Shown here piece by piece: positions 42,201 through 62,357 of a stretch of DNA of 64,000 bases. A program made the position numbers and the translations under genes. Positions within the stretch are counted from its first letter, which is position 1, and the number at the start of each line of letters is the position of its first letter. The stretch is from assembly GCA_950097015.1 (NCBI GenBank), contig CATNEN010000007.1, positions 3,534,001-3,598,000 of the forward strand, written 5' to 3'. Origin of the DNA: Macrostomum hystrix. Its lineage: Eukaryota; Animalia; Platyhelminthes. Under the pieces are notes generated by a model, which was not told where the DNA came from, made no database searches, and was given only the letters and a program-made list of their open reading frames with translations.

Positions 42201-43795
42201 TTAGCTGTGTGATCCATCAACAGTTAGCTGTGTGATCTATCAACCATTAGCTGCATGATCTATCAAGCATTAGCTGTGTGATCTATCAACCATTAGCTGT
42301 GTGATCTATTAACCATTAGCTGTGTGATCTATTAACCATTAGCTGTGTGATCTATCAACCATTAGCTGTGTGATCTATCAACCATTAGCTGTGTGATCTA
42401 TCAACCATTAGTTGTGTGATCCATCAACAGTTAGCTGTGTGATCCATCAACAGTTAGCTGTGTGATCTATCAACCATCAGCTGTGTGATCTATCAACCAT
42501 TAGCTGTGTGATCTATCAACCATTAGCTGTGTGATCCATCAACAGTTAGCTGTGTGATCTATCAACCATTAGCTGTGTGATCTATCAACCATTAGCTGTG
42601 TGATCCATCAACCATTAGCTGTGTGATCTATCAACCATTAGCTGTGTGATCCATCAACAGTTAGCTGTGTGATCTATCAACCATTAGCTGTGTGATCTAT
42701 CAACCATTAGCTGTGTGATCCATCAACAGTTAGCTGTGTGATCCATCAACAGTTAGCTGTGTGATCTATCAACCATTAGCTGTGTGATCTATCAACCATT
42801 AGCTGTGTGATCTATCAACCATTAGCTGTGTGATCCATCAACAGTTAGCTGTGTGATCTATCAACCATTAGCTGTGTGATCTATCAACCATTAGCTGTGT
42901 GATCCATCAACCATTAGCTGTGTGATCTATCAACCATTAGCTGTGTGATCCATCAACAGTTAGCTGTGTGATCTATCAACCATTAGCTGTGTGATCCATC
43001 AACAGTTAGCTGTGTGATCTATCAACCATTAGCTGTGTGATCCATCAACAGTTAGCTGTGTGATCTATCAACCATTAGCTGTGTGATCCATCAACAGTTA
43101 GCTGTGTGATCCATCAACCATTAGCTGTGTGATCCATCAACAGTTAGCTGTGTGATCTATCAACCATTAGCTGTGTGATCTATCAACCATTAGCTGTGTG
43201 ATCCATCAACAGTTAGCTGTGTGATCTATCAACCATTAGGTGTGTGATCTATCAACCATTAGCTGTGTGATCTATCAACCATTAGCTGTGTGATCTATCA
43301 ACCATTAGCTGTGTGATCCATCAACCATTAGCTGTGTGATCTATCAACCATTAGCTGTGTGATCCATCAACAGTTAGCTGTGTGATCTATCAACCATTAG
43401 CTGTGTGATCCATCAACAGTTAGCTGTGTGATCTATCAACCATTAGCTGTGTGATCCATCAACAGTTAGCTGTGTGATCTATCAACCATTAGCTGTGTGA
43501 TCTATCAACCATTAGCTGTTTAATAAAATAGGCTAAAGCCAGCCCCACCCCCAAGCGGGTGAAAGGCCGACGCCATGTACATTTAGACCATTCAGACAAG
43601 ACTTGCCAACGCACAGCACGTGCCACGCAGGAACCCCACACTATCAACAGTTGATTGATAAACCATGACTCGTATCAGTGCGATCCAACAACTCACAATT
43701 CTCTCATAGTACTCTCTTCTGCGCTGGGCCCGCTTGCGATAATCGACCATGGAGGTTCGAATCTGCTTCTCTTGTCGCCTGGCCTCGACCCACAT
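16065..43795 (-). CDS. CLASRP: CLASRP/SFRS16 (SWAP-related, DRY_EERY-domain SR-rich splicing regulator), 12 coding exons, about 850 aa
   Basis: Manual model complement(join 43697-43795, 41266-41363, 40959-41072, 39623-39705, 39313-39406, 39118-39236, 32587-32762, 31385-31461, 27977-28822, 20851-20890, 17919-18018, 16065-16771) = 2553 nt, all GT-AG with consistent phases. Motifs MWVEARRQEK..VDYRKRAQRRREYYE, WQG..IDRFDVRA, CNYERY..VQND, AIGYTY, YGM...DF, GKKSRRERR, LTPQQ and ADK follow the order of human CLASRP from memory. Confidence 0.9.
17919..18018 (-). CDS. CLASRP: CLASRP exon 11
   Basis: PLSAAATKPSAAAKSLTPQQLLQQRLSVAISKT; acceptor ttttttccag, donor GTGAGT. Confidence 0.82.
18110..20646. 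repeat. 22-bp minisatellite, about 115 copies (CLASRP intron 10)
   Basis: CTGGGTGTGACTGCTGAGGTGT. Confidence 0.97.
20851..20890 (-). CDS. CLASRP: CLASRP exon 10 (40-nt small exon)
   Basis: (R)SNPLERSGGIGLK; acceptor cattacag, donor GTAAGC. Supplies the phase 2 to phase 0 shift needed between exons 9 and 11. Confidence 0.62.
21105..22290. repeat. 34-bp minisatellite, about 35 copies
   Basis: CAGCAGATTATGACCCCATGACCAGCTATCCTAC alternating with a ..ACTAACTAT.. variant. Confidence 0.96.
22950..23280. repeat. Degenerate GGGAT-rich 26-30-bp array
   Basis: TTATTGGGATCATTTTGGTAATGGGA-type units. Confidence 0.8.
24478..24795. repeat. 42-bp minisatellite, about 7-8 copies
   Basis: AACCTGAAATCCCAGATCCCAAATCCCAAAACGAAGCAATCT. 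Confidence 0.93.
25538..26060. repeat. About 23-bp minisatellite
   Basis: AAATCCCAGTTTTCAACTCTTTT. Confidence 0.9.
27585..27805. repeat. 35-bp minisatellite, about 6 copies
   Basis: AAAGGAACGATGACCAACTAAAATGACCAGTTCGG. Confidence 0.9.
27977..28822 (-). CDS. CLASRP: CLASRP exon 9 (RS/Ser-rich region)
   Basis: Open frame with SSSS and RSRSRSRS tracts. The acceptor cacag at 28823 was chosen because it is the only nearby AG in the required phase; a TACTAAC branch site lies at 28861-28867. Donor GTTCGT. Confidence 0.75.
28925..29220. repeat. Degenerate AT-rich array
   Basis: Recurrent AGTAACGA core with variable A-rich linkers. Confidence 0.7.
29985..30285. repeat. 24-bp minisatellite
   Basis: GCTGCGATTCTAGATAAGGCTCTT. 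Confidence 0.93.
30948..31316. repeat. 42-bp minisatellite, about 9 copies
   Basis: TAGTTTCACAGATCTGGGATTCTAACACAGCTAACGGGAATC. Confidence 0.95.
31385..31461 (-). CDS. CLASRP: CLASRP exon 8
   Basis: GKKSRRERRMFKEQRLKQRSQLRPL; acceptor ttaacag, donor GTGAGG. Confidence 0.85.
32012..32578. repeat. About 15-bp monomer array with 91-bp higher-order unit
   Basis: TATCCCTGACA(AC)AGCA monomers; GCATTATCCTTACAG recurs at 32021, 32112, 32203 and 32294. Confidence 0.88.
32587..32762 (-). CDS. CLASRP: CLASRP exon 7
   Basis: DVDIEPEKLTPEQV...KYGMEKSDFLKLLRLDKELEESERLAKAEEEERAQMS; donor GTGAGT. Confidence 0.88.
32795..33062 (-). mobile_element. tRNA-derived SINE, diverged copy of the same family, lacking the tail
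   Basis: Reverse complement aligns by eye with 50872-51140: TAGCCCATTGG A-box, GAGTTCGAACCC B-box, GTCCTTGAG, CAGTTCAACCAGCTGTG, CCCCAGTCCACGGACTGAA, CGCAATAGCTGC. Confidence 0.72.
39118..39236 (-). CDS. CLASRP: CLASRP exon 6
   Basis: EAKAAIGYTYSDS...DISDEDI; donor GTAAG. Confidence 0.85.
39313..39406 (-). CDS. CLASRP: CLASRP exon 5
   Basis: (L)SELAALRQIEMEEKFGLDDSKKEEAEKAKK; phases fit the neighbouring exons; weak donor GTTATT. Confidence 0.75.
39623..39705 (-). CDS. CLASRP: CLASRP exon 4
   Basis: LTRDERNEERCCNYERYRVLVQNDHAS; acceptor ttttag, donor GTAAG. Confidence 0.88.
39930..40890. repeat. 25-bp minisatellite (CLASRP intron 3)
   Basis: GAGGATCTGGGAAGATTAGGGACAT and variants, with 100/125-bp higher-order blocks. 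Confidence 0.92.
40959..41072 (-). CDS. CLASRP: CLASRP exon 3
   Basis: (M)LKWQGNPEVLIDRFDVRANLD...; acceptor ctccag, donor GTGAGC. Confidence 0.88.
41266..41363 (-). CDS. CLASRP: CLASRP exon 2
   Basis: KQDPIKFMRLTGRQARIHCDSDVFHAAENPQT; acceptor cccgcag, donor GTAAG. Confidence 0.85.
41388..43519. repeat. 23-bp minisatellite, about 93 copies (CLASRP intron 1); contains the left duplication breakpoint
   Basis: TCAACCATTAGCTGTGTGATCTA; the last 11 units recur at 53447-53692. Confidence 0.97.
43697..43795 (-). CDS. CLASRP: CLASRP coding exon 1
   Basis: MWVEARRQEKQIRTSMVDYRKRAQRRREYYERI, donor GTGAGT, phase 0. Confidence 0.9.
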
Positions 43796-44019
43796 GGTCA
43801 GGGGCTGCTTAGAATTGATAAGTTGAAAACTTTTTATGCGGTGCAAAAGTTATTAGGTTAGATTAGGGTTTGCAGATGCTGAATAGAATAGCCAATGACA
43901 ACTGAAACGAAATGCAATGCACAATTGGATTATCTTTGTTTGTACCAGATCCAACGAGTAGACAAGTGACATGGAAGAACTCACTCAGGGAGGGAAAAAA
44001 CTTATTTAGACTGGGGAAA

Positions 44020-44185
44020 AACTCATTAAGGCAGGGTAAGAACTCATTCAGACAGGGGAAGAACTCATTCAGGTAGGGGACGAACTCATTCAGGTAGGGG
44101 AAGAACTCATTCAGACAGGGGAAGAACTCATTCATGTAGGGGAAGAACTCATTCAGGCAGGGGAAGAGCATACTTAGGGGAAGAG
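44020..44185. repeat. 21-bp minisatellite (copy at 54193-54358)
   Basis: GGGGAAGAACTCATTCAGACA. Confidence 0.88.
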
Positions 44186-45180
44186 CTCGTTGATAAAAGC
44201 ACAGTTAAAAAAGCAAATAAAACTAGCTGTTCAAATCCCATAGGTCAAGCATTATGCGGCTTTAACTAGTTTATTAATTTCTGTGTTTCATAGCTGCTTC
44301 TGCAGCAATCGTTGACAAACAGTCCAATTTCGGCGCACATAAAGCATCTATTGAGATGATTCATAATAAAAGTACAAAACACGAGTTCATTACAAGATCC
44401 AAATTTGAAACGCTTATGAATTATATAGAATGAATAAGAATAACTTCTGTGAATTATAGAATTTTTTCTGGCATATTTTTTACAAAGCTTGGATCGATCA
44501 AACAACAGCAAAAATAGGATAAACACTGTTTCAAATACCCAGAACTCATCAATGCTTTCAGTACCGGGTCTGGTGAGAAATAAAATCACATTTAAATTGA
44601 CAAAAAAGAAATGAGATAAACAGACAAAGTATTAGGACAAACAGAAGACAGGCCCCTTTCTCACCGTGTCACGCGCTTCTAAAGTGTTAGATAAAAAACT
44701 TGCCGATATGTTTCGAAAAAGTAAAATCAATCTACAGTACTTATTGATCAGACCGAATGGCAGATAGACAGACAGTGAGCGACAGGCAGAGAAGATGCAG
44801 AGCATCTAAAGGCAGTAAAAAGAGAGGCGAGAAAGACAACGAATCGGTGATTGGGCAGTCATGACAGATTGCATGGCAGCTGCAGAAATGAGAACAACAG
44901 ATCAAACACCAACGTGGGATGTGAAGCAAATGAGCAAATAGTCTTATGGAACTTTCAAATAAAAATTACAAATCAAATATTTAAGGAATCAGACAAGCAA
45001 CTGAAAAGTTCTCACAGTGCTAAATAAGAAGCCGCTTTTATTGTAGCAAAACATAAACATGAGCTTAGCAAAGAAAAAACATACAATTATGGACAAAAAA
45101 ACTATTTGATTCAAGTATCGTGGAAAAATTGTACCATTCCTCAAGTATAACAATTAGATATATTACAATCCCCACGCCTC

Positions 45181-45642
45181 AATATCCCCATATCCTCAAT
45201 ATCCCCATTCCTAACTGACGTCAGGGATCAATATCCCATTCCTAACTGACGTCAGGGATCAATATCCCATTCCTAACTGACGTCAGGGATCATTATTCCC
45301 ATTCCTAATCTGACCGTCAGGGATCAATATCCCCATTCCTAATCTGACCGTCAGGGATCAATATCCCATTCCTAACTGACGTCAGGGATCAATATCCCAT
45401 TCCTAACTGACGTCAGGGATCAATATCCCATTCCTAACTGACGTCAGGGATCAATATCCCAATTCCTAACTGACCGTCAGGAATCAATATCCCCATTCCT
45501 AATCTGACCGTCAGGGATCAATATCCCCATTCCTAATCTGACCGTCAGGGATCAATATCCCATTCCTAACTGACGTCAGGGATCAATATCCCATTCCTAA
45601 CTGACGTCAGGGATCAATATCCCCATTCCTAATCTGACCGTC
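45181..45642. repeat. 31-34-bp minisatellite carrying TGACGTCA (copy at 55354-55815)
   Basis: CATTCCTAACTGACGTCAGGGATCAATATCC. Confidence 0.92.
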
Positions 45643-45825
45643 GGGTTTTTTTTCCCGAATTCTTCATAGAAACCGTATAGGATTAAACTATTTGATATTT
45701 CTCAATTTGTTATCGGGTGATCTCACTTACCATTCCTCAGCGTGGTCGTTAGTTGCAAGAATTGCCACTTATAATGAAAAAGAATGAATTTTAGCCTTTG
45801 AAAAGGTTCAGGAACAGCTTCAAAC

Positions 45826-47742
45826 CTAATGCTTCTTGTTTCCAGGCGAGGCACCGGAGAAACTGTTTAACTCCAGAGTGCGGTACAGGGCGCCCATGTC
45901 GAGGCGAAATGTGGCCCAAGTGTCGGATCTGAACCGCGCAGCACCAGCCGGCTGATCAGCCTGCTTCAGGCCAGCAGAGCCATTGGCATTGGCAGCTGCT
46001 TTAGAAGCGCCCGGCCTCACATAATCCGGATAGATCTGAAACGGCAGGCCCAGCCTAGTGGCTTCCATGGCCAATTGGTTCAGCTCGTCAAAGCTCAGAG
46101 AGTTGGGATCTGACACCGTGAGCATGCCCGACTCTGTGGCCACCAGCTTGTGAGACGCAATCATCGTCGGCTCGTTCGTCGAAGCGGTGCCATCAGACGC
46201 TGAGGAAGCGGCGGGTCGACCTTGACCTTGAGGATTTTGACCGCCGCCTCCACCACGCTTCTGCCGATTGCGTTGCTTTCCACCTCCGCCTGAGTTCTCC
46301 TTATTGCTGTTGCTAGGCGTCGGGACGCTTGACGGTGCAGCGGCGGCGGCCGACGCGGCTGCAACAGCGGCAGCAGCCGCCGCAGCGGCCGCTGAATCTC
46401 CGGCAGTTGGCCTAGAACTCTTGCGCTGCTGCTGAGAGCGCCGATGCTGCTGTTGCTGTTGCTGTGGCGTTAAAGCTGGTGGGCCGGCGGCCGATCCCGG
46501 ATGTTGCATCATCAGTGGCGGGGGCTGCTGCTGCTGTTGCTGAGCCAAGGAGGCATTGTCTGACATGCGCAGAGCGGCCACCCTTGACATGCCACTCTGA
46601 CGCACAAGGGCCGCCCACCTTCGCAACTGGGCAACAAAGGGAATGACTAGAAAAAAGTCCTTGGATTTCAAGGCAATGCGCCTGGCGCAGTCCTCGTCGC
46701 TGCGGCTAGTGGGCAGGTCGGCCAGGCGGAACCACATGATGGCTTCGATTTCGTTTCGAGTCTCCGGCCGGAATGCGAAGTCCATGGGCACATCCGGGAC
46801 CAGGTAAAGCCTGGACAAGGCCGAGCCGACTACGCGCTCGATGTACAACTCGGGATCAATCTTGGGCCCGATGTCGTAGCCGGTCTCCTCTTGTACTTCG
46901 CGCACTGCCGCCTGCGGAAAGAACTTGGCCTTGGCCTCGCGATCGTTGATTTTGCCGCGCGGAAACATCCAGCCGGGAGTGAAGCCCTTAACCAAAACCA
47001 CCTGGACGGAAAATGTGCGACTGTATAGTGGGATCATCAAACAAAAATTATTCTAGCTGCTGATACTGTAAAACCTTAGTGACCACTTTGAACTATGTCC
47101 TAACAATGCCTTCGTCCTTTTCTTATCAGCGATTTCTTACAATTCAGTAACCTCTTATCCTATTTTCCACGTTGCTAAGCCATGTGTTCTCTCTGCTTCG
47201 CCCCTTTCTCCCCACTTCTATTCCCCGGTCTCCCCAAACCCCTTCCTGTCTCCCCATTCTTCCCTTCCCAATCGCTTAATTCTTCTTTTCTTTATCTCTC
47301 ATTTCTTCCCATCCTAATCTCCTAATGCTTTCCAATCCCACTAAAAGCCAGTGGGATCACACACCTGGTCCAGATCGGAATTCATCAACGCAGCGCCGCA
47401 GGTTGGCGTCTCGGCTTTGGTGCGCCGCCATTCGTCATAATGAGTCTGCCAGGTCTGACTGTAGTTGGCCAGCTTGCCGCAGTGGCGAAACACTTGCGCC
47501 GAAAACTGGTACATCTTCAGTGGCTGCAATTTGTTCTCGGCAACCAGATTGTCCAGGTAGAACCAATAGGCGTGCTCGATCTCATAGAATAGTTTTACAG
47601 CATTTGTAAAATAGTGACCGGGCAGGTTCACAATGAACCGGCTGCACAGGTCATCCAAAACCAGAACAGGAATCGCTGGTCCAGCCTCGTCAGTAAAGCC
47701 AGCATCCAGGCCAATGCCTGATGATGAAGAAGCTAACTGAGA
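45826..47742 (-). CDS. DCP2: mRNA decapping enzyme DCP2 (Box A + Nudix), copy 1; start codon not found
   Basis: Exons 47365-47742 (IPVLVLDDLCSRFIVNLP...EHAYWFYLD...PTCGAALMNSDLDQ) and 45826-47001 (VVLVKG..GWMFPRGK...REVQEETGYDI...RLY...ETRNEIEAIMWF); phase-0 GT-AG intron; low-complexity C-terminal tail. Confidence 0.92.
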
Positions 47743-50273
47743 CTGCAAAGAGTCAAAGACACATTGTAAAGCAAAACACACTTTTTGAAACGAACTTATT
47801 TGCTGATTTAATTTTTATACAAACATTTTTAGACAATTACTTGTATTTTTAAACCAACTGTGACATGATAGTGCATATACTTCTGCTTTCCTTTTGCTCA
47901 TTAATTTTTTTGTTTACATTTAAAATTAGATTAATATTTTCATTTCTTGTGCTTTATTTAAAAAAAATGAAAGAAAAATATATTTAGCCATAATACTAAT
48001 ACAGTCAACTGGACTATATTTTTATAAAACATTAAAAGAGAAAAGAAATAGATCCATAAAGGTATAAGATATCATTACAACCCCCGTAGGCCAGCTAACA
48101 ATAAAATGATTTTCAAAGAAGTTAAATTGAAGATTTAAATTAATAAAAGTAGGATATTCTTGTGTTGGCAAATATACTGTTACAAGATCAATGCTAGTGG
48201 ATATGAACATAGAATAATGTAACATGGATAATGGCTTATTTGAAAGCACCTAGCAATAGCAAGGCTACTAGCATTATAATCATTTAGAAATAATTTCAAC
48301 CTCAAATAAAACATGGTATTGATTAAAAATGCATTTTTATTATTTTTTCTGAATATTGGTGTGGAAGGTGTGATGTGAATGATACTATTCAAATTTTTAC
48401 TTTAAATTGGTTCAGTCAATTTTAAAACAAGAATAATTGAACAAAAAGTTGCTTAAGCCAAAAGGCTAAGATGTGTCTTGGGGGGTATAAATTAGTAGAG
48501 GGTAATTAGGAGGAGGGCTGTAGGGAAAACAATGGCAAAGCAACAGCAACTGATGGCAGAGTGACAGCAATTGAGTGACAACTGACAGCAAGTGATGACA
48601 AAAGTGAAGAGAACACTCCAACAACAAGCACCACAGAAGATTGTCAACTTTAACAAACCACAAGCAGAACTTCAGCTCAACCACAAGGGACGATAAGAAG
48701 AAACTCAAGTGGCTGAGCTAAGGGCCTGCCAAGATTAGAAACTGCTGATGCGGAGGAGGTAGCCTAGGCAAATACAGGCAACAGGAAGCAAGGCAAAGGA
48801 GGATTAGATTAAATTGAGCAGAAGATAAAATATACACAAAAAATTCACCTAAATTAATTGATACTAGTATAAAACTTAGCAACTATAATGATATATAAAT
48901 TCAATAGACAATTTTCAATTGTGATTGAGTATCTAAAATGAAAATGCTGACAGAAGCAGAGTATCAATAAAAGTTGAGAAGGAGGCAGAAAAGGGCAACT
49001 TGGTTGCCCTTAATTGTGAATCACTTTCTGTCACTACTAGAAAGCTGTGTATCTCGTGACAAGCCTGAGATACATTCAGCAAACAAGAGATTTTTGGTCT
49101 TTTTTATTTTGACTAGACACCAAGCACCACCAGAAAAAGAAAACCAAAAAGATGACTCAATTTCTTTTGTTAAATTTGAGGTGGAAATTTTGGCAGACAT
49201 AATTTCATTGCTTCAAAGGTCATACATGGCTTCATGCTAGGCACATCTTTTTTACAATCCTTTGTGCAATATGTTATAGAAACAAAAGTTCTTACTCTCC
49301 TTGCTCTGCCTTTTTACAAGTTTATTTTTTGGCAATCCTTTAGATTTGCATGTTTAAGTAGGCCTATTTTAAATATATATAAAGAAGTTTAAACATTTTA
49401 ATAAGTAAATAAATAAACTTTTCTGGGTAGCACTAGCACACAATAAAGTGTCCTCAGACCCTTTTTATTATTGATTTGGTAGATAAAGGCTTGCTGATTG
49501 TCACTACTAAGTAAAATAGTGAAAACATTGTTGTCTTTGTAAAAAAATTAACATGTAAAACTAGAAGATTGCCTGTTAAAATTTACAAGGTTTAAATTTT
49601 TATTGCTTGTAAATCAATTTAAATCCACCTTTATCCATTTTAAGGCCGAAACTTGAAAATGTGCTCTGCTCTTGCTTAAAAAAGTTATTAAAGAGTCTAA
49701 TTTTAATTTGAATTTGGAAAGTACCACAGTACCATTAAAATATATACTGATTTAATCTTTGATTTAATCTTTAAAACTTATATGTTAATTTTTAACCATC
49801 AATAATTTAACTGTTAATATATAGCCTATTGAATCTACAGCCTAAGTATTACAAAGTGTTATTTCTAACAATTTGATTAGGAAGTATGACATATTGTAGG
49901 CCTAGACACATTTCACATAGGCCCTAGCTATAGCCATAGGGCCTACCTTGCAGCACAATTTTGTTCCTCAGCTTATTGGCCTTTCTATGCTTGCAAATTA
50001 AACCTAGGCCTATTTAGAATTGCTTATAATAATATTATATATTGCTTTGCTGAATACTTAGTCCTAGAATTAGTAAAAAGCAGCTAAGATATGATAAATT
50101 AAAAATCTATATTTTCTTTTTGTATGGTATATCTATATAAAGATTGAAAAATTAATTTAATAAAGCGGTAAACATAGGTTCGTAACTTTTTTTGTCATGC
50201 TACTGTTAGGCACATTCAATTTTATACTCAGCGTCGCAACTTATCATAATCCTGTGCATTAGACATGATAAAC

Positions 50274-50333
50274 CAAGGACCACTAGAAGTAGAGTGGTCC
50301 TTCTTCTAGTCCTTCTTCTTCTAGTGTTCCTTG
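50274..50333. mobile_element. 60-bp TIR element (micro-MITE or footprint) with 9-bp TSD
   Basis: TIRs CAAGGACCACTAGAAG / CTTCTAGTGTTCCTTG (15/16 match), flanked by ATGATAAAC at 50265-50273 and 50334-50342. Confidence 0.7.
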
Positions 50334-50871
50334 ATGATAAACATTAGCTTCGAAATGGAAAATAGCTTCAATTAAGAAAAAGAAGTTTTTGCCTAGCCGT
50401 TAGAGATTCTGAGAAGCATACCTAGATTTAACAAACATGGACATACCCTTGCTTCTTGAATGGCACTAATGTTTAGATTTTATGAAATAAAAGGTTTTTC
50501 TTATATAAAATATCGTAAAATGCTCTTCTTAGAGCGAGAAAAAGTTCACTTGCTAAAAAACCGTTAATTCCTGAACCGAACCGAGGAAAAGAATCGGTTC
50601 TGTAATTCTGGGAAAAGCTGTATAAACTCACAGCGCCTTAGATCGAGTGGAGCGCAAGCAATAAAGACGGCAGTTATTTGTGACAATTATGAAGCAGTTA
50701 GCAGAAAATTAACCAATGAATGATTGAATTACTATTATTTGATAGAAACCTTGCTCTATTCCCTAAATGAAAAGTCTATATGAAGATTGTATTAAAAGTC
50801 TTCTGTAACTTATGACGTTATCGGTCCAATGACTACTTACTAGTATGTAGACGCTTCATAAGTATGCATAC

Positions 50872-51183
50872 AGAGGTTGTAGCCTAGTGGTTAGGGCGTC
50901 GGACTCACGACTTGAAGTTCGGGGCTTCGATTCCCGATTTCACGGAAACAATGAGTCCTTTAGCAACACACTTAACTCTGCATCGCTTTAGTTCACCCAG
51001 CTGTTAAATGGGAACCAGCATAAGCTGGGATAATTGAAGGTGGGTGTGGCGTCCCCCCCAGTCCATGGACTGAACAGCTGTACGCAGCCTTCAGATGCGC
51101 CGCGCAATAGCTGCGGCTTTGCTGTCGGCTGCACATCTGGCCCGATTGGGACATGTGTAATCAATTACAATTACCAATTATTC
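50872..51183 (+). mobile_element. tRNA-derived SINE
   Basis: A-box TAGCCTAGTGG (50880), B-box GCTTCGATTCC (50924), central GTCCTTTAGCAACACACTTAAC...CACCCAGCTGTTAAATGGGAACC, CAATTA-type tail; a homologous copy lies at 32795-33062. Confidence 0.75.
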
Positions 51184-52184
51184 ATACGTATGTAGCTGTT
51201 AAGAGCTTTCCGAGCTTTCTTTATTGCAAATCATAGAAAATGTTATTTTAATCTTTGACCGGTGCTAGTTAAAGTAGTACTGATCCGTTACTGCACAACT
51301 AAGTATTTACTATTACTTGAAGAATTAATCAAGCATCGCAAGTGTTCTCATACAAGTCCTCTTGCAAAGGAATTCCCTTACAGCGAAGAATGACATGCAA
51401 AAAGAAAGTCAAAATTTACCGTAAGGCGTGCGTAGTGGCGCTTGCAAATAAAAAAGTAATTCAGAATTGATGGCGAAATTCAGATTATAGAGTCACTCGG
51501 AATAAAGAGATGGAAAACGTTAACTGTTATTTGTTAATCATTGTATTTAAAAATTTACTGAAAGGTCGTTAGAAAATATTACTATGGCCAGCAGAAAATA
51601 AATATGATTTAGTCACCATAAAGAAAAAGAAAACGAAGCGCATAATGCTTGCGAAAAATTGCAGTAAGCTTTCGGACAATAAATTTAATAGACTTAGTAG
51701 CATAGCCAAAATGTAAATTTAACTGGTAAGTCAAAGGAAAAAATAGTCAATGTTGCTTATTGGACCAGATACTCGAGAAAAGCTGGTCTGACATTGCACC
51801 AAAAAGCACCAATTTAAGTTTATAAAGTTTGGCTATCGGAAAACTGTCTAGAAACTTGCTGCTTTATAATAAGTAAATTAGCAAAATAGATATGTATCGT
51901 AAAATTTATATAGAAGTAAAGTAAATATTTAAAAATATAGATATATATTAGAGAAAATGCCATTCGATCCTATTTGCAAAGTAGTAAAAGCTTTTAATTA
52001 GACAATTTAGTTTCATGTAAGGTAATTAGAAAACTTTAGATGTTAAAATTGTGTCAGCAATGGAATCAATTACATAGTCAGATTCTAATCAGGGTGAAAC
52101 TCGGGTGCAGCTTATCATCAGATAGTTCATTCAGTTTTTACCTAATTCAACACTGCTGCTTGTATTGTACTTTCTGTGGTAAAC

Positions 52185-52676
52185 TCAGAACTTGAAGCCG
52201 CCTGGCGGGGCGTTCGTGTCGGTCGGAGCTGAGAAGTCGATCTGGCCGCTCCCGGCGCCCCCAATGCCGCCGGCCTCATCGGCGCCGCCTTCGTCCTCGG
52301 CGCTGAAGTAGGTTTCAATCATCTGCTGGGCCATTTCGAATACTCGTTCGTTCTCGTGCTCCTGCAGGGCTTCGAGTTTGTCTAGGCCGCCGCAGCCTTC
52401 AATCACGATGCACATGTCGTCGGCCTGGCCGTACTTCTTGGCCAGACTGAGCAGGGAGTTAAGCGACTCCATTACTATGCAGACTATCTTGGCCTCTTGA
52501 ACGGCCAGCATCTCGCAAAGGGCCGGAACAACATTCTGATTGGCCAGGTAGCTGATCTGGGCTTCGCTGCCGCCAGTGACCATGTTGGTTAGGGCCCAGG
52601 TGGCCTCTTTCTTGGCTTTGAAGTCGCCGTTAACCATGATGCCAATTAGTGGCGGAATCAGGTTGTTGTCGATCAC
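52185..52676 (-). CDS. KPNA: Orphan duplicate of the importin-alpha last exon (163 aa); potential 3' half of a chimeric gene
   Basis: Matches 62358-62849. Only 10 nt (53440-53449) of the preceding importin exon were co-duplicated. Confidence 0.8.
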   Translation of the reverse strand: MIDNNLIPPLIGIMVNGDFKAKKEATWALTNMVTGGSEAQISYLANQNVVPALCEMLAVQEAKIVCIVMESLNSLLSLAKKYGQADDMCIVIEGCGGLDKLEALQEHENERVFEMAQQMIETYFSAEDEGGADEAGGIGGAGSGQIDFSAPTDTNAPPGGFKF

Positions 52677-52744
52677 CTGAGAGTGAGAGATTGCAGCGAA
52701 ATCAGTGCACAAGATGCCCAAAGGTCATCAAACTGAGGAAGGCA

Positions 52745-53385
52745 GTGCTGAAGGGTCATAAGACTGATGGAGGCGGTGATGGAAGGTCATGAGACTGATA
52801 GACGCAGTGATGGAAGGTCATGAGACTGATAGAGACAGTGATGGAAGGTCATGAGACTGATAGAGGCAGTGATGGAAGGTCATGAGACTGATATAGACAG
52901 TGATGGAAGGTCATGAGACTGATAGAGGCAGTGATGGAAGGTCATGAGACTGATATAGACAGTGATGGAAGGTCATGAGACTGATAGAGGCAGTGATGGA
53001 AGGTCATGAGACTGATAGAGGCAGTGATGGAAGGTCATGAGACTGATAGAGGCAGTGATGGAAGGTCATGAGACTGATAGAGACAGTGATGGAAGGTCAT
53101 GAGACTGATAGACGCAGTGATGGAAGGTCATGAGACTGATAGAGGCAGTGATGGAAGGTCATGAGACTTATGGAGGCGGTGATGGAAGGTCATGAGACTG
53201 ATAGAGGCAGTGATGGAAGGTCATGAGACTGATAGAGGCAGTGATGGAAGGTCATGAGACTGATAGTGGCAGTGATGGAAGGTCATGAGACTGATAGAGA
53301 CAGTGATGGAAGGTCATAAGACTGATAGAGGCAGTGATGGAAGGTCATGAGACTGATAGAGGCACTGATGGAAGGTCATCAGACT
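52745..53385. repeat. 31-bp minisatellite, about 20 copies, in the last importin-alpha intron (copy at 62918-63558)
   Basis: GTGATGGAAGGTCATGAGACTGATAGAGGCA. Confidence 0.95.
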
Positions 53386-53869
53386 GTAACGGAGGCTGTT
53401 TGGAAGATTAAAAGAACAGCGCCTCTGTCGCCAACACACCATTTGAATCAACCATTAGCTGTGTGATCTATCAACCATTAGCTGTGTGATCCATCAACCA
53501 TTAGCTGTGTGATCTATCAACCATTAGCTGTGTGATCCATCAACAGTTAGCTGTGTGATCTATCAACCATTAGCTGTGTGATCCATCAACAGTTAGCTGT
53601 GTGATCTATCAACCATTAGCTGTGTGATCCATCAACAGTTAGCTGTGTGATCTATCAACCATTAGCTGTGTGATCTATCAACCATTAGCTGTTTAATAAA
53701 ATAGGCTAAAGCCAGCCCCACCCCCAAGCGGGTGAAAGGCCGACGCCATGTACATTTAGACCATTCAGACAAGACTTGCCAACGCACAGCACGTGCCACG
53801 CAGGAACCCCACACTATCAACAGTTGATTGATAAACCATGACTCGTATCAGTGCGATCCAACAACTCAC

Positions 53870-53968
53870 AATTCTCTCATAGTACTCTCTTCTGCGCTGG
53901 GCCCGCTTGCGATAATCGACCATGGAGGTTCGAATCTGCTTCTCTTGTCGCCTGGCCTCGACCCACAT
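53870..53968 (-). CDS. CLASRP: Duplicate CLASRP exon 1; potential 5' half of a chimeric gene
   Basis: Matches 43697-43795, with upstream region and GTGAGT donor intact; its intron is cut at 53447. Confidence 0.8.
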
Positions 53969-55998
53969 GGTCAGGGGCTGCTTAGAATTGATAAGTTGAA
54001 AACTTTTTATGCGGTGCAAAAGTTATTAGGTTAGATTAGGGTTTGCAGATGCTGAATAGAATAGCCAATGACAACTGAAACGAAATGCAATGCACAATTG
54101 GATTATCTTTGTTTGTACCAGATCCAACGAGTAGACAAGTGACATGGAAGAACTCACTCAGGGAGGGAAAAAACTTATTTAGACTGGGGAAAAACTCATT
54201 AAGGCAGGGTAAGAACTCATTCAGACAGGGGAAGAACTCATTCAGGTAGGGGACGAACTCATTCAGGTAGGGGAAGAACTCATTCAGACAGGGGAAGAAC
54301 TCATTCATGTAGGGGAAGAACTCATTCAGGCAGGGGAAGAGCATACTTAGGGGAAGAGCTCGTTGATAAAAGCACAGTTAAAAAAGCAAATAAAACTAGC
54401 TGTTCAAATCCCATAGGTCAAGCATTATGCGGCTTTAACTAGTTTATTAATTTCTGTGTTTCATAGCTGCTTCTGCAGCAATCGTTGACAAACAGTCCAA
54501 TTTCGGCGCACATAAAGCATCTATTGAGATGATTCATAATAAAAGTACAAAACACGAGTTCATTACAAGATCCAAATTTGAAACGCTTATGAATTATATA
54601 GAATGAATAAGAATAACTTCTGTGAATTATAGAATTTTTTCTGGCATATTTTTTACAAAGCTTGGATCGATCAAACAACAGCAAAAATAGGATAAACACT
54701 GTTTCAAATACCCAGAACTCATCAATGCTTTCAGTACCGGGTCTGGTGAGAAATAAAATCACATTTAAATTGACAAAAAAGAAATGAGATAAACAGACAA
54801 AGTATTAGGACAAACAGAAGACAGGCCCCTTTCTCACCGTGTCACGCGCTTCTAAAGTGTTAGATAAAAAACTTGCCGATATGTTTCGAAAAAGTAAAAT
54901 CAATCTACAGTACTTATTGATCAGACCGAATGGCAGATAGACAGACAGTGAGCGACAGGCAGAGAAGATGCAGAGCATCTAAAGGCAGTAAAAAGAGAGG
55001 CGAGAAAGACAACGAATCGGTGATTGGGCAGTCATGACAGATTGCATGGCAGCTGCAGAAATGAGAACAACAGATCAAACACCAACGTGGGATGTGAAGC
55101 AAATGAGCAAATAGTCTTATGGAACTTTCAAATAAAAATTACAAATCAAATATTTAAGGAATCAGACAAGCAACTGAAAAGTTCTCACAGTGCTAAATAA
55201 GAAGCCGCTTTTATTGTAGCAAAACATAAACATGAGCTTAGCAAAGAAAAAACATACAATTATGGACAAAAAAACTATTTGATTCAAGTATCGTGGAAAA
55301 ATTGTACCATTCCTCAAGTATAACAATTAGATATATTACAATCCCCACGCCTCAATATCCCCATATCCTCAATATCCCCATTCCTAACTGACGTCAGGGA
55401 TCAATATCCCATTCCTAACTGACGTCAGGGATCAATATCCCATTCCTAACTGACGTCAGGGATCATTATTCCCATTCCTAATCTGACCGTCAGGGATCAA
55501 TATCCCCATTCCTAATCTGACCGTCAGGGATCAATATCCCATTCCTAACTGACGTCAGGGATCAATATCCCATTCCTAACTGACGTCAGGGATCAATATC
55601 CCATTCCTAACTGACGTCAGGGATCAATATCCCAATTCCTAACTGACCGTCAGGAATCAATATCCCCATTCCTAATCTGACCGTCAGGGATCAATATCCC
55701 CATTCCTAATCTGACCGTCAGGGATCAATATCCCATTCCTAACTGACGTCAGGGATCAATATCCCATTCCTAACTGACGTCAGGGATCAATATCCCCATT
55801 CCTAATCTGACCGTCGGGTTTTTTTTCCCGAATTCTTCATAGAAACCGTATAGGATTAAACTATTTGATATTTCTCAATTTGTTATCGGGTGATCTCACT
55901 TACCATTCCTCAGCGTGGTCGTTAGTTGCAAGAATTGCCACTTATAATGAAAAAGAATGAATTTTAGCCTTTGAAAAGGTTCAGGAACAGCTTCAAAC

Positions 55999-57915
55999 CT
56001 AATGCTTCTTGTTTCCAGGCGAGGCACCGGAGAAACTGTTTAACTCCAGAGTGCGGTACAGGGCGCCCATGTCGAGGCGAAATGTGGCCCAAGTGTCGGA
56101 TCTGAACCGCGCAGCACCAGCCGGCTGATCAGCCTGCTTCAGGCCAGCAGAGCCATTGGCATTGGCAGCTGCTTTAGAAGCGCCCGGCCTCACATAATCC
56201 GGATAGATCTGAAACGGCAGGCCCAGCCTAGTGGCTTCCATGGCCAATTGGTTCAGCTCGTCAAAGCTCAGAGAGTTGGGATCTGACACCGTGAGCATGC
56301 CCGACTCTGTGGCCACCAGCTTGTGAGACGCAATCATCGTCGGCTCGTTCGTCGAAGCGGTGCCATCAGACGCTGAGGAAGCGGCGGGTCGACCTTGACC
56401 TTGAGGATTTTGACCGCCGCCTCCACCACGCTTCTGCCGATTGCGTTGCTTTCCACCTCCGCCTGAGTTCTCCTTATTGCTGTTGCTAGGCGTCGGGACG
56501 CTTGACGGTGCAGCGGCGGCGGCCGACGCGGCTGCAACAGCGGCAGCAGCCGCCGCAGCGGCCGCTGAATCTCCGGCAGTTGGCCTAGAACTCTTGCGCT
56601 GCTGCTGAGAGCGCCGATGCTGCTGTTGCTGTTGCTGTGGCGTTAAAGCTGGTGGGCCGGCGGCCGATCCCGGATGTTGCATCATCAGTGGCGGGGGCTG
56701 CTGCTGCTGTTGCTGAGCCAAGGAGGCATTGTCTGACATGCGCAGAGCGGCCACCCTTGACATGCCACTCTGACGCACAAGGGCCGCCCACCTTCGCAAC
56801 TGGGCAACAAAGGGAATGACTAGAAAAAAGTCCTTGGATTTCAAGGCAATGCGCCTGGCGCAGTCCTCGTCGCTGCGGCTAGTGGGCAGGTCGGCCAGGC
56901 GGAACCACATGATGGCTTCGATTTCGTTTCGAGTCTCCGGCCGGAATGCGAAGTCCATGGGCACATCCGGGACCAGGTAAAGCCTGGACAAGGCCGAGCC
57001 GACTACGCGCTCGATGTACAACTCGGGATCAATCTTGGGCCCGATGTCGTAGCCGGTCTCCTCTTGTACTTCGCGCACTGCCGCCTGCGGAAAGAACTTG
57101 GCCTTGGCCTCGCGATCGTTGATTTTGCCGCGCGGAAACATCCAGCCGGGAGTGAAGCCCTTAACCAAAACCACCTGGACGGAAAATGTGCGACTGTATA
57201 GTGGGATCATCAAACAAAAATTATTCTAGCTGCTGATACTGTAAAACCTTAGTGACCACTTTGAACTATGTCCTAACAATGCCTTCGTCCTTTTCTTATC
57301 AGCGATTTCTTACAATTCAGTAACCTCTTATCCTATTTTCCACGTTGCTAAGCCATGTGTTCTCTCTGCTTCGCCCCTTTCTCCCCACTTCTATTCCCCG
57401 GTCTCCCCAAACCCCTTCCTGTCTCCCCATTCTTCCCTTCCCAATCGCTTAATTCTTCTTTTCTTTATCTCTCATTTCTTCCCATCCTAATCTCCTAATG
57501 CTTTCCAATCCCACTAAAAGCCAGTGGGATCACACACCTGGTCCAGATCGGAATTCATCAACGCAGCGCCGCAGGTTGGCGTCTCGGCTTTGGTGCGCCG
57601 CCATTCGTCATAATGAGTCTGCCAGGTCTGACTGTAGTTGGCCAGCTTGCCGCAGTGGCGAAACACTTGCGCCGAAAACTGGTACATCTTCAGTGGCTGC
57701 AATTTGTTCTCGGCAACCAGATTGTCCAGGTAGAACCAATAGGCGTGCTCGATCTCATAGAATAGTTTTACAGCATTTGTAAAATAGTGACCGGGCAGGT
57801 TCACAATGAACCGGCTGCACAGGTCATCCAAAACCAGAACAGGAATCGCTGGTCCAGCCTCGTCAGTAAAGCCAGCATCCAGGCCAATGCCTGATGATGA
57901 AGAAGCTAACTGAGA
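55999..57915 (-). CDS. DCP2: DCP2, copy 2 (apparently identical duplicate)
   Basis: Exons 57538-57915 and 55999-57174; same translation as copy 1 at offset +10173. Confidence 0.9.
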
Positions 57916-60446
57916 CTGCAAAGAGTCAAAGACACATTGTAAAGCAAAACACACTTTTTGAAACGAACTTATTTGCTGATTTAATTTTTATACAAACATT
58001 TTTAGACAATTACTTGTATTTTTAAACCAACTGTGACATGATAGTGCATATACTTCTGCTTTCCTTTTGCTCATTAATTTTTTTGTTTACATTTAAAATT
58101 AGATTAATATTTTCATTTCTTGTGCTTTATTTAAAAAAAATGAAAGAAAAATATATTTAGCCATAATACTAATACAGTCAACTGGACTATATTTTTATAA
58201 AACATTAAAAGAGAAAAGAAATAGATCCATAAAGGTATAAGATATCATTACAACCCCCGTAGGCCAGCTAACAATAAAATGATTTTCAAAGAAGTTAAAT
58301 TGAAGATTTAAATTAATAAAAGTAGGATATTCTTGTGTTGGCAAATATACTGTTACAAGATCAATGCTAGTGGATATGAACATAGAATAATGTAACATGG
58401 ATAATGGCTTATTTGAAAGCACCTAGCAATAGCAAGGCTACTAGCATTATAATCATTTAGAAATAATTTCAACCTCAAATAAAACATGGTATTGATTAAA
58501 AATGCATTTTTATTATTTTTTCTGAATATTGGTGTGGAAGGTGTGATGTGAATGATACTATTCAAATTTTTACTTTAAATTGGTTCAGTCAATTTTAAAA
58601 CAAGAATAATTGAACAAAAAGTTGCTTAAGCCAAAAGGCTAAGATGTGTCTTGGGGGGTATAAATTAGTAGAGGGTAATTAGGAGGAGGGCTGTAGGGAA
58701 AACAATGGCAAAGCAACAGCAACTGATGGCAGAGTGACAGCAATTGAGTGACAACTGACAGCAAGTGATGACAAAAGTGAAGAGAACACTCCAACAACAA
58801 GCACCACAGAAGATTGTCAACTTTAACAAACCACAAGCAGAACTTCAGCTCAACCACAAGGGACGATAAGAAGAAACTCAAGTGGCTGAGCTAAGGGCCT
58901 GCCAAGATTAGAAACTGCTGATGCGGAGGAGGTAGCCTAGGCAAATACAGGCAACAGGAAGCAAGGCAAAGGAGGATTAGATTAAATTGAGCAGAAGATA
59001 AAATATACACAAAAAATTCACCTAAATTAATTGATACTAGTATAAAACTTAGCAACTATAATGATATATAAATTCAATAGACAATTTTCAATTGTGATTG
59101 AGTATCTAAAATGAAAATGCTGACAGAAGCAGAGTATCAATAAAAGTTGAGAAGGAGGCAGAAAAGGGCAACTTGGTTGCCCTTAATTGTGAATCACTTT
59201 CTGTCACTACTAGAAAGCTGTGTATCTCGTGACAAGCCTGAGATACATTCAGCAAACAAGAGATTTTTGGTCTTTTTTATTTTGACTAGACACCAAGCAC
59301 CACCAGAAAAAGAAAACCAAAAAGATGACTCAATTTCTTTTGTTAAATTTGAGGTGGAAATTTTGGCAGACATAATTTCATTGCTTCAAAGGTCATACAT
59401 GGCTTCATGCTAGGCACATCTTTTTTACAATCCTTTGTGCAATATGTTATAGAAACAAAAGTTCTTACTCTCCTTGCTCTGCCTTTTTACAAGTTTATTT
59501 TTTGGCAATCCTTTAGATTTGCATGTTTAAGTAGGCCTATTTTAAATATATATAAAGAAGTTTAAACATTTTAATAAGTAAATAAATAAACTTTTCTGGG
59601 TAGCACTAGCACACAATAAAGTGTCCTCAGACCCTTTTTATTATTGATTTGGTAGATAAAGGCTTGCTGATTGTCACTACTAAGTAAAATAGTGAAAACA
59701 TTGTTGTCTTTGTAAAAAAATTAACATGTAAAACTAGAAGATTGCCTGTTAAAATTTACAAGGTTTAAATTTTTATTGCTTGTAAATCAATTTAAATCCA
59801 CCTTTATCCATTTTAAGGCCGAAACTTGAAAATGTGCTCTGCTCTTGCTTAAAAAAGTTATTAAAGAGTCTAATTTTAATTTGAATTTGGAAAGTACCAC
59901 AGTACCATTAAAATATATACTGATTTAATCTTTGATTTAATCTTTAAAACTTATATGTTAATTTTTAACCATCAATAATTTAACTGTTAATATATAGCCT
60001 ATTGAATCTACAGCCTAAGTATTACAAAGTGTTATTTCTAACAATTTGATTAGGAAGTATGACATATTGTAGGCCTAGACACATTTCACATAGGCCCTAG
60101 CTATAGCCATAGGGCCTACCTTGCAGCACAATTTTGTTCCTCAGCTTATTGGCCTTTCTATGCTTGCAAATTAAACCTAGGCCTATTTAGAATTGCTTAT
60201 AATAATATTATATATTGCTTTGCTGAATACTTAGTCCTAGAATTAGTAAAAAGCAGCTAAGATATGATAAATTAAAAATCTATATTTTCTTTTTGTATGG
60301 TATATCTATATAAAGATTGAAAAATTAATTTAATAAAGCGGTAAACATAGGTTCGTAACTTTTTTTGTCATGCTACTGTTAGGCACATTCAATTTTATAC
60401 TCAGCGTCGCAACTTATCATAATCCTGTGCATTAGACATGATAAAC

Positions 60447-60506
60447 CAAGGACCACTAGAAGTAGAGTGGTCCTTCTTCTAGTCCTTCTTCTTCTAGTGT
60501 TCCTTG
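60447..60506. mobile_element. 60-bp TIR element (duplicated copy)
   Basis: Same as 50274-50333 at +10173. Confidence 0.7.
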
Positions 60507-61044
60507 ATGATAAACATTAGCTTCGAAATGGAAAATAGCTTCAATTAAGAAAAAGAAGTTTTTGCCTAGCCGTTAGAGATTCTGAGAAGCATACCTAGAT
60601 TTAACAAACATGGACATACCCTTGCTTCTTGAATGGCACTAATGTTTAGATTTTATGAAATAAAAGGTTTTTCTTATATAAAATATCGTAAAATGCTCTT
60701 CTTAGAGCGAGAAAAAGTTCACTTGCTAAAAAACCGTTAATTCCTGAACCGAACCGAGGAAAAGAATCGGTTCTGTAATTCTGGGAAAAGCTGTATAAAC
60801 TCACAGCGCCTTAGATCGAGTGGAGCGCAAGCAATAAAGACGGCAGTTATTTGTGACAATTATGAAGCAGTTAGCAGAAAATTAACCAATGAATGATTGA
60901 ATTACTATTATTTGATAGAAACCTTGCTCTATTCCCTAAATGAAAAGTCTATATGAAGATTGTATTAAAAGTCTTCTGTAACTTATGACGTTATCGGTCC
61001 AATGACTACTTACTAGTATGTAGACGCTTCATAAGTATGCATAC

Positions 61045-61356
61045 AGAGGTTGTAGCCTAGTGGTTAGGGCGTCGGACTCACGACTTGAAGTTCGGGGCTT
61101 CGATTCCCGATTTCACGGAAACAATGAGTCCTTTAGCAACACACTTAACTCTGCATCGCTTTAGTTCACCCAGCTGTTAAATGGGAACCAGCATAAGCTG
61201 GGATAATTGAAGGTGGGTGTGGCGTCCCCCCCAGTCCATGGACTGAACAGCTGTACGCAGCCTTCAGATGCGCCGCGCAATAGCTGCGGCTTTGCTGTCG
61301 GCTGCACATCTGGCCCGATTGGGACATGTGTAATCAATTACAATTACCAATTATTC
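61045..61356 (+). mobile_element. tRNA-derived SINE (duplicated copy)
   Basis: Same sequence as 50872-51183 at +10173. Confidence 0.75.
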
Positions 61357-62357
61357 ATACGTATGTAGCTGTTAAGAGCTTTCCGAGCTTTCTTTATTGC
61401 AAATCATAGAAAATGTTATTTTAATCTTTGACCGGTGCTAGTTAAAGTAGTACTGATCCGTTACTGCACAACTAAGTATTTACTATTACTTGAAGAATTA
61501 ATCAAGCATCGCAAGTGTTCTCATACAAGTCCTCTTGCAAAGGAATTCCCTTACAGCGAAGAATGACATGCAAAAAGAAAGTCAAAATTTACCGTAAGGC
61601 GTGCGTAGTGGCGCTTGCAAATAAAAAAGTAATTCAGAATTGATGGCGAAATTCAGATTATAGAGTCACTCGGAATAAAGAGATGGAAAACGTTAACTGT
61701 TATTTGTTAATCATTGTATTTAAAAATTTACTGAAAGGTCGTTAGAAAATATTACTATGGCCAGCAGAAAATAAATATGATTTAGTCACCATAAAGAAAA
61801 AGAAAACGAAGCGCATAATGCTTGCGAAAAATTGCAGTAAGCTTTCGGACAATAAATTTAATAGACTTAGTAGCATAGCCAAAATGTAAATTTAACTGGT
61901 AAGTCAAAGGAAAAAATAGTCAATGTTGCTTATTGGACCAGATACTCGAGAAAAGCTGGTCTGACATTGCACCAAAAAGCACCAATTTAAGTTTATAAAG
62001 TTTGGCTATCGGAAAACTGTCTAGAAACTTGCTGCTTTATAATAAGTAAATTAGCAAAATAGATATGTATCGTAAAATTTATATAGAAGTAAAGTAAATA
62101 TTTAAAAATATAGATATATATTAGAGAAAATGCCATTCGATCCTATTTGCAAAGTAGTAAAAGCTTTTAATTAGACAATTTAGTTTCATGTAAGGTAATT
62201 AGAAAACTTTAGATGTTAAAATTGTGTCAGCAATGGAATCAATTACATAGTCAGATTCTAATCAGGGTGAAACTCGGGTGCAGCTTATCATCAGATAGTT
62301 CATTCAGTTTTTACCTAATTCAACACTGCTGCTTGTATTGTACTTTCTGTGGTAAAC

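Follow-up and report, generated by a model that had tools for sequence, protein, structure and literature searches.

Chimeric genes formed by tandem duplications with breakpoints in two genes have been described in surveys of Drosophila yakuba and Drosophila simulans (PMC4069613, PMC5460883). In these chimeras one breakpoint falls in each of two same-strand genes, the parents remain intact, and a 5′ gene is fused to a 3′ gene; the promoter comes from one parent and the 3′ end from the other, the fusion is seen in RNA-seq, and the enclosed gene is doubled. The locus described here shares these properties; it lies in a 64,000-nucleotide stretch of Macrostomum hystrix DNA that was analysed as a whole (the window), and it fuses a CLASRP-like gene to an importin-alpha gene, the doubled gene being a DCP2 homologue. 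It differs from the Drosophila chimeras in its flatworm host, in its spliced-leader-capped transcript and in having one breakpoint in an intronic minisatellite; furthermore, the surveys draw on population samples, whereas the support here comes from one RNA contig. A chimeric gene at a tandem-duplication junction is a known kind of gene, and the present case is a very young one in a flatworm. It is considered likely, with a probability of roughly 0.8, that a very recent tandem duplication made an expressed CLASRP::importin-alpha chimera that is likely neutral or mildly harmful; this reading draws on that one RNA contig, and the 100.000% identity of the duplicated copies is also expected of false duplication or polishing.

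The region of importin-alpha that binds CAS comprises residues 383-497, with residues 469-478 as its core, and C-terminal importin-alpha fragments from ARM 9 onward have been made as stable, soluble GST fusions (PMC3218035). The 163-aa importin exon of the chimera resembles the C-terminal ARM 9-10 region of importin-alpha (KPNA) proteins (E 5e-47), with Pfam Arm and Arm_3 matches and the CAS-binding region; unlike importin-alpha, the chimera lacks the IBB domain and ARM 1-8, including the major and minor NLS sites, and is a fragment rather than a functional member of the family. The other parent belongs with CLASRP and the SWAP-type DRY_EERY regulators; the first 33 residues of the chimera form a CLASRP-like N-terminus with 97% identity to the annotated N-terminus of the Macrostomum lignano gene that lies downstream of DCP2, however the chimera keeps only these 33 residues upstream of DRY_EERY (the Pfam match runs from exon 2) and has no RS region. 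Circular-RNA back-splices provide a further comparison, as the joining of a downstream donor to an upstream acceptor looks identical in RNA to a duplication junction; unlike in a back-splice, the assembly here shows the two exons in cis order, and the acceptor belongs to a terminal exon without a donor of its own. Macrostomum has operons resolved by spliced-leader trans-splicing, and the spliced leader of M. lignano is 35 nt long (PMC8629364).

Comparison of the window with itself reveals a 10,173-bp unit that is duplicated directly in tandem; positions 43274-53449 match 53447-63622 at 100.000% identity across 10,176 bp, and the copies overlap by 3 nt at 53447-53449. Perfect identity over 10,176 bp is far above chance. 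The parts of the duplication are the following:

43274 to 53449: tandem duplication copy 1, the downstream copy in the minus-strand gene direction
53447 to 63622: tandem duplication copy 2, the upstream copy in the gene direction
53447 to 53449: duplication junction, ATC on the plus strand and GAT on the minus strand, common to both breakpoints
52721 to 53386: array of 21.5 units of a 31-nt minisatellite within the last intron of importin, the same in both copies
53447 to 53692: truncated 23-nt minisatellite of CLASRP intron 1, 10.7 units
41383 to 43519: parent array of the 23-nt minisatellite in CLASRP intron 1, 92.9 units, 2.1 kb

Enclosed in the duplicated unit are the importin-alpha last exon with its 3′ UTR, the whole DCP2-like gene, and exon 1 of CLASRP together with the region upstream of it; four minisatellite arrays lie inside it, all identical between the copies. 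Both breakpoints are inside genes, two different ones on the same strand. One falls inside the 23-nt minisatellite of CLASRP intron 1, an intron that in the parent consists almost entirely of this array (43519-41383); the other interrupts unique coding sequence of the importin-alpha penultimate exon, 10 nt short of the exon end. The flanks to the left and right of 53447-53449 do not match each other. By our estimate at least three shared bases occur by chance in about 5% of joins, and the 3-nt overlap may be taken as mild evidence for microhomology-mediated joining. Since one breakpoint lies in unique coding sequence and only 3 nt are shared, the junction is unlike repeat recombination or repeat-driven misassembly. 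The DNA pattern of the junction had no match among JGI metagenome contigs. A separate Rfam profile search over 40000-64000 returned only the tRNA-like head of a SINE, with nothing bearing on the chimera.

The importin-alpha, DCP2-like and CLASRP-like genes are on the minus strand throughout, in that order. Along this strand the importin penultimate and last exons are followed by the DCP2-like gene, CLASRP exon 1 and the junction; beyond the junction come a second importin last exon, a second DCP2-like gene and a second CLASRP exon 1, which continues into intron 1 and exons 2-3. The parent and enclosed genes are placed as follows:

63613 to 63864, minus strand: parent importin-alpha penultimate exon, 84 codons, donor gtgtgt, Pfam Arm 1.8e-16, 95% identical to M. 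lignano
62358 to 62849, minus strand: coding part of the parent importin-alpha last exon, with an identical copy in the duplication
55999 to 57954, minus strand: whole DCP2-like gene in copy 2, with a box A ORF and a Nudix ORF (Pfam DCP2 5.9e-22, NUDIX 3.9e-9)
45826 to 47781, minus strand: whole DCP2-like gene in copy 1, identical to that of copy 2
43697 to 43795, minus strand: coding part of parent CLASRP exon 1, with an identical copy in the duplication
41266 to 41363, minus strand: parent CLASRP exon 2, with a weak DRY_EERY match; its start is the loose end that RNA run X2 carries at 53870
40959 to 41072, minus strand: parent CLASRP exon 3, Pfam DRY_EERY 2.8e-8, above the curated cut-off

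A sequence-only reading that preceded this analysis had held that both parent genes remain intact, and they do: beside the chimera the importin penultimate and last exons are contiguous from 63864 to 62358, CLASRP exons 1-3 stand at 43795-40959, and RNA contigs carry the normal splices of both genes.

A protein search with the DCP2 ORF found an M. lignano protein as the only close relative, with an identity of 89% in the Nudix core and 63% overall. On the M. lignano contig importin-alpha ends 8.6 kb upstream of the DCP2 homologue and an 827-aa gene starts 3.6 kb downstream of it; importin-alpha, DCP2 and the CLASRP-like gene thus stand in the same order, each in single copy. This single-copy order represents the ancestral arrangement, and the duplication is specific to the lineage of the window. 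The importin exons are 80-95% identical to those of M. lignano. The name CLASRP-like is justified by the 97% identity to the start of the M. lignano gene together with the DRY_EERY match of exon 3; judged by this conservation, the 33-aa leader, which the sequence-only reading had called superficially IBB-like, is simply the conserved CLASRP N-terminus.

At the junction a copy of CLASRP exon 1 stands 1193 nt upstream of a copy of the importin-alpha last exon, the architecture that the sequence-only reading had described; its coordinates for exon 1, the GTGAGT donor, the 1193-nt intron, the ctctcag acceptor and the 163 codons plus TGA, and its assignment of phase 0, are all correct. The chimeric gene comprises these parts:

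53870 to 54074, minus strand: chimera exon 1, a copy of CLASRP exon 1, with the 5′ UTR at 54074-53969 and the CDS at 53968-53870 (33 codons, phase 0, donor GTGAGT)
52677 to 53869, minus strand: chimera intron of 1193 nt, skipped by the joint in run X2, with plus-strand ends CT..AC (minus-strand GT..AG)
51673 to 52676, minus strand: chimera last exon, copied from that of importin-alpha, with the CDS at 52676-52185 (163 codons plus TGA) and the 3′ UTR running to about 51673
53440 to 53458, minus strand: candidate 19-nt micro-exon proposed earlier, flanked by cacacag and gtgtgt

The two exons were checked apart, for frame and for Pfam domains, and both are in phase 0 and open. Exon 1 starts with ATG at 53968 and stays open for 33 codons to 53870, where GTGAGT follows. 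The intron, which ends in ctctcag at 52677, is made up in order of the start of CLASRP intron 1, the junction, 10 nt left over from the importin penultimate exon, and the importin last intron. The last exon (52676-52185) matches Pfam Arm at 3.6e-11 and Arm_3 at 7.2e-18. That the two exons fit in frame has a chance of one in three and is unremarkable alone. A word search of public protein sets with the 163-aa exon returned only a 35%-identical protein.

Four sequencing runs (X1, X2, X9 and X11) were compared with positions 51500-55500. X1 is a DNA run; X2 belongs to another study and has the character of RNA, with contigs that end exactly at the exon edges 52676 and 53870, nearly empty introns, and exons covered by contigs at 51673-52676 and 53870-54075. 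One X2 contig joins 53870 to 52676, exactly the splice from exon 1 to the importin last exon that had been predicted with RNA as its check; 1193 nt with GT..AG ends on the minus strand are skipped, four letters at the joint fit either side and none lie in between. The shorter side of this joint has 26 letters plus the four ambiguous ones, a total of 30, which is below the 31-letter bridging rule, and the joint is found in one contig of one run. Thirty letters equal k-1 for a graph of 31-letter words, as expected where the chimeric path meets the normal importin path; all 30 junction-spanning words must therefore occur in the X2 reads. Mean word depth in X2 is 77.8 at the joint, 90.6 in exon 1 and 199.8 in the last exon (contig depths are rough), and the chimeric junction is not a trace species in this run. 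The competing micro-exon of the earlier reading did not fare as well; its sequence is present at 53440-53458, but there are no letters between the two sides of the joint and X2 depth across it is 0.61, which leaves the micro-exon without support.

The X2 contig of exon 1 has 24 extra letters upstream of 54075, which in reverse complement match the 3′ part of the spliced leader of M. lignano; this indicates that exon 1 is trans-spliced at the tttcag just upstream of 54074. The normal joining of CLASRP exons 1 and 2 is also present in X2, where the letters of a loose end at 53870 are those that begin exon 2 at 41363. X9 and X11, which carry other organism labels and are 99% alike and of low depth, hold the normal importin splice from penultimate to last exon unbroken, the 3′ end of the penultimate exon appearing as a loose end at 52677. 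The chimeric joint is absent from X9 and X11; neither covers CLASRP exon 1, and these two runs consequently say little about the chimera.

It is proposed that a 10,173-bp tandem duplication occurred in Macrostomum, the 3 nt shared by its breakpoints fitting either end-joining or a replication error, and that the junction set a second CLASRP 5′ end before a second importin-alpha last exon. The new unit would be transcribed like CLASRP, with the spliced leader added at the CLASRP acceptor; the exon 1 donor would then be cis-spliced to the importin last exon, whose acceptor is the sole one downstream, and the transcript would end at the importin poly(A) region. Leader addition, the cis-splice and the importin end are all shown by the RNA contigs.

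A different reading takes the duplication as an assembly artefact of a single-copy locus, and the RNA joint as a back-splice (circular RNA) of a read-through or polycistronic importin-DCP2-CLASRP pre-mRNA, with the donor of CLASRP exon 1 spliced back to the acceptor of the importin last exon upstream; we regard this as distinctly unlikely. It would accommodate the perfect identity of the copies, minisatellites included, and the genome may be one of the long-read assemblies that were made from pooled inbred worms with canu, Arrow and Pilon, polishing with both long and short reads (PMC10468722), an origin of the window that we infer. The three genes are also on one strand in a genus that has operons with spliced-leader trans-splicing (PMC8629364), and RNA by itself cannot separate a tandem duplication from a back-splice. 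Among the X1 records listed no DNA contig crosses 53447-53449, as an artefact would have it, although there are 34 further records and such holes prove nothing. In a single-copy genome the contig over 53387-53449 should run into the importin exon as a loose end at 53449; no X1 contig does so, as all five partly placed records sit elsewhere (here too, holes prove nothing). An X1 contig of an importin paralogue touches 52572-52607, overlaps by about 30-36 positions and raises the bin mean by about 15.5; the implied depth of the paralogue is about 58-69 against 120-145 in the duplicated region, roughly 1:2, although depths summed in this way do not count copies. The pattern of the X1 contigs and this rough 2:1 depth weakly favor two copies over an artefact; X1 may be the sample behind the assembly itself. 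An artefact is further opposed by the position of one breakpoint in unique exon sequence, with a 3-nt microhomology and no shared repeat. The back-splice needs a donor downstream of the importin last exon, which is a terminal exon, and 10 kb of read-through beyond the importin poly(A) site; the circle must also about equal CLASRP exon 1 in abundance (77.8 against 90.6, both rough), and two independent rare events, the artefact and the back-splice, must predict the same junction. It is very improbable that there is no duplication and that the joint stems from intermolecular trans-splicing of CLASRP and importin pre-mRNAs or from a library chimera. Spliced-leader trans-splicing is very active in the host; however, the exon-to-exon type between protein-coding genes is rare, a library chimera would not fall on an exact GT..AG at a depth near that of the parent exon, and the assembly independently shows the cis arrangement.

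Where the duplication and its transcript are both real, as in the preferred reading, the question turns to the product. The joined ORF of 33 and 163 codons is in frame and encodes 196 aa; its stop lies inside the last exon, and the mRNA should therefore escape nonsense-mediated decay. In the predicted protein, the N-terminal helix conserved in CLASRP precedes the final two and a half to three ARM repeats of importin-alpha, and the importin tail follows. Its importin part contains one ARM without the first seven Pfam positions, a second ARM, an atypical Arm_3 and an acidic/glycine-rich tail; the first helix of one ARM repeat is interrupted at the exon boundary, as the Pfam Arm match begins at profile position 8. 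In alignments to importin-alpha chains in the PDB the exon covers residues 374-503 of one with 529 aa (E about 5e-47 to 1e-46), and by this alignment to structures it spans the equivalents of both the CAS-binding region and its core. The chimera keeps the C-terminal ARM 9-10 and Arm_3 region (Arm_3 7.2e-18), which aligns with the part of importin-alpha that binds CAS. It has no IBB domain, its N-terminus being CLASRP exon 1, which gave no match in a Pfam search on its own; it also lacks the ten-ARM NLS groove, since only the equivalent of 374-503 is present and both NLS-binding sites are missing. The DRY_EERY domain is lost as well, being encoded in exons 2-3 of the parent, whereas the chimera holds only exon 1 upstream of it. 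With no IBB domain and neither NLS site, the product cannot import cargo. Tight binding to the exporter also uses the IBB domain docked in the NLS groove, as in the Cse1p-Kap60p-RanGTP complex (PDB 1wa5); a strong decoy effect is therefore doubtful.

It has been suggested that the product is a functional 'mini-importin', a CLASRP leader on ARM 9-10 and the tail that would bind CAS, possibly also Nup50, and would modulate the recycling of importin-alpha. The alignment to residues 374-503, spanning 383-497 and 469-478, would suit such a role, as would the stability of C-terminal fragments from ARM 9 onward as GST fusions (PMC3218035) and an in-frame ORF with its stop in the last exon on an mRNA that seems abundant. 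We nevertheless consider it unlikely: the IBB domain and the NLS groove used in tight CAS binding are both missing, the first ARM helix is cut by the exon boundary, and newborn chimeras are mostly neutral or harmful. As the two copies do not differ at a single position, selection has had no time to act and has left no signal to read. The fuller form of the idea seems decidedly improbable, namely that the newborn chimera gives a stable 196-aa protein with a CAS/Nup50-binding end, regulated like CLASRP, that it acts as a decoy altering importin-alpha recycling, and that it is rising in this Macrostomum lineage. Most probably the newborn chimeric gene is neutral or mildly harmful; it may also be polymorphic.

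The locus carries a caution for annotation, as its RNA junction would be taken for the back-splice of a circular RNA on a reference without the duplication. It presents a chimeric gene at age zero, with no substitution between the copies, intact parents, a doubled DCP2 and a fusion splice already in RNA; such newborn chimeras are useful for understanding how new genes start. As Macrostomum is a transgenic, RNAi-tractable model, the fate and effect of the fusion are directly testable, and if the decoy reading were true, the chimera would be a new nuclear-transport regulator caught essentially at birth.

The DCP2-like gene of the window, which combines box A and Nudix regions with a long Q/A/G-rich tail, is present as two identical copies because the tandem duplication doubled the whole gene; M. 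lignano carries a single DCP2-like gene at the syntenic place.

45826-47781 and 55999-57954, minus strand: DCP2-like decapping-enzyme gene, complete, two copies
50873-51182 and 61046-61355, plus strand: tRNA-headed element (Rfam tRNA)
33051-32806: further occurrence of the tRNA-headed element in the window

The tRNA-headed element located between importin-alpha and DCP2 matches the Rfam tRNA model at 32.9 bits and is probably a SINE. A sequence adjoining DCP2 on its upstream side in M. lignano (contig L001, 9516-9823) is 83% identical to it over 315 nt; its orientation relative to the genes is reversed between the two species.

The importin-alpha gene also has a paralogue, contigs of which match the window at about 52572-52607. 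Twelve letters past the match, the contigs of the DNA run enter intron-like sequence and those of the RNA run another exon; the paralogue therefore has an exon boundary that is absent from the window gene.

Minisatellites are abundant in the window, with many further arrays having units of 22, 25, 31 and 21 nt; in the array at 18-20 kb, G/C and A/T are strongly skewed between the strands. In both species a minisatellite fills CLASRP intron 1, and the repeat units are unrelated: the window has a 23-nt unit and M. lignano another short one.

18110-20646, 40007-40886, 45196-45638 and 43973-44167: further minisatellite arrays
41383-43519 (M. lignano, L001:15970-16805): minisatellite filling CLASRP intron 1
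53694-53813, copy at 43521-43640: high-copy repeat within CLASRP intron 1, ~120 nt long
54036-54075, minus strand: CLASRP exon 1 acceptor and upstream ORF

Word depth in the DNA run X1 is ~766 at the 53694-53813 repeat compared to 140 nearby, and the repeat recurs with unrelated flanks in RNA contigs of X2, an RNA-like run from another study, and X9, a low-depth run labeled as another organism. The Macrostomum spliced leader, whose 3' end is ATG, is added at the CLASRP exon 1 acceptor; after trans-splicing this leader ATG opens a 13-codon upstream ORF that stops at 54036, before the main ATG at 53968.
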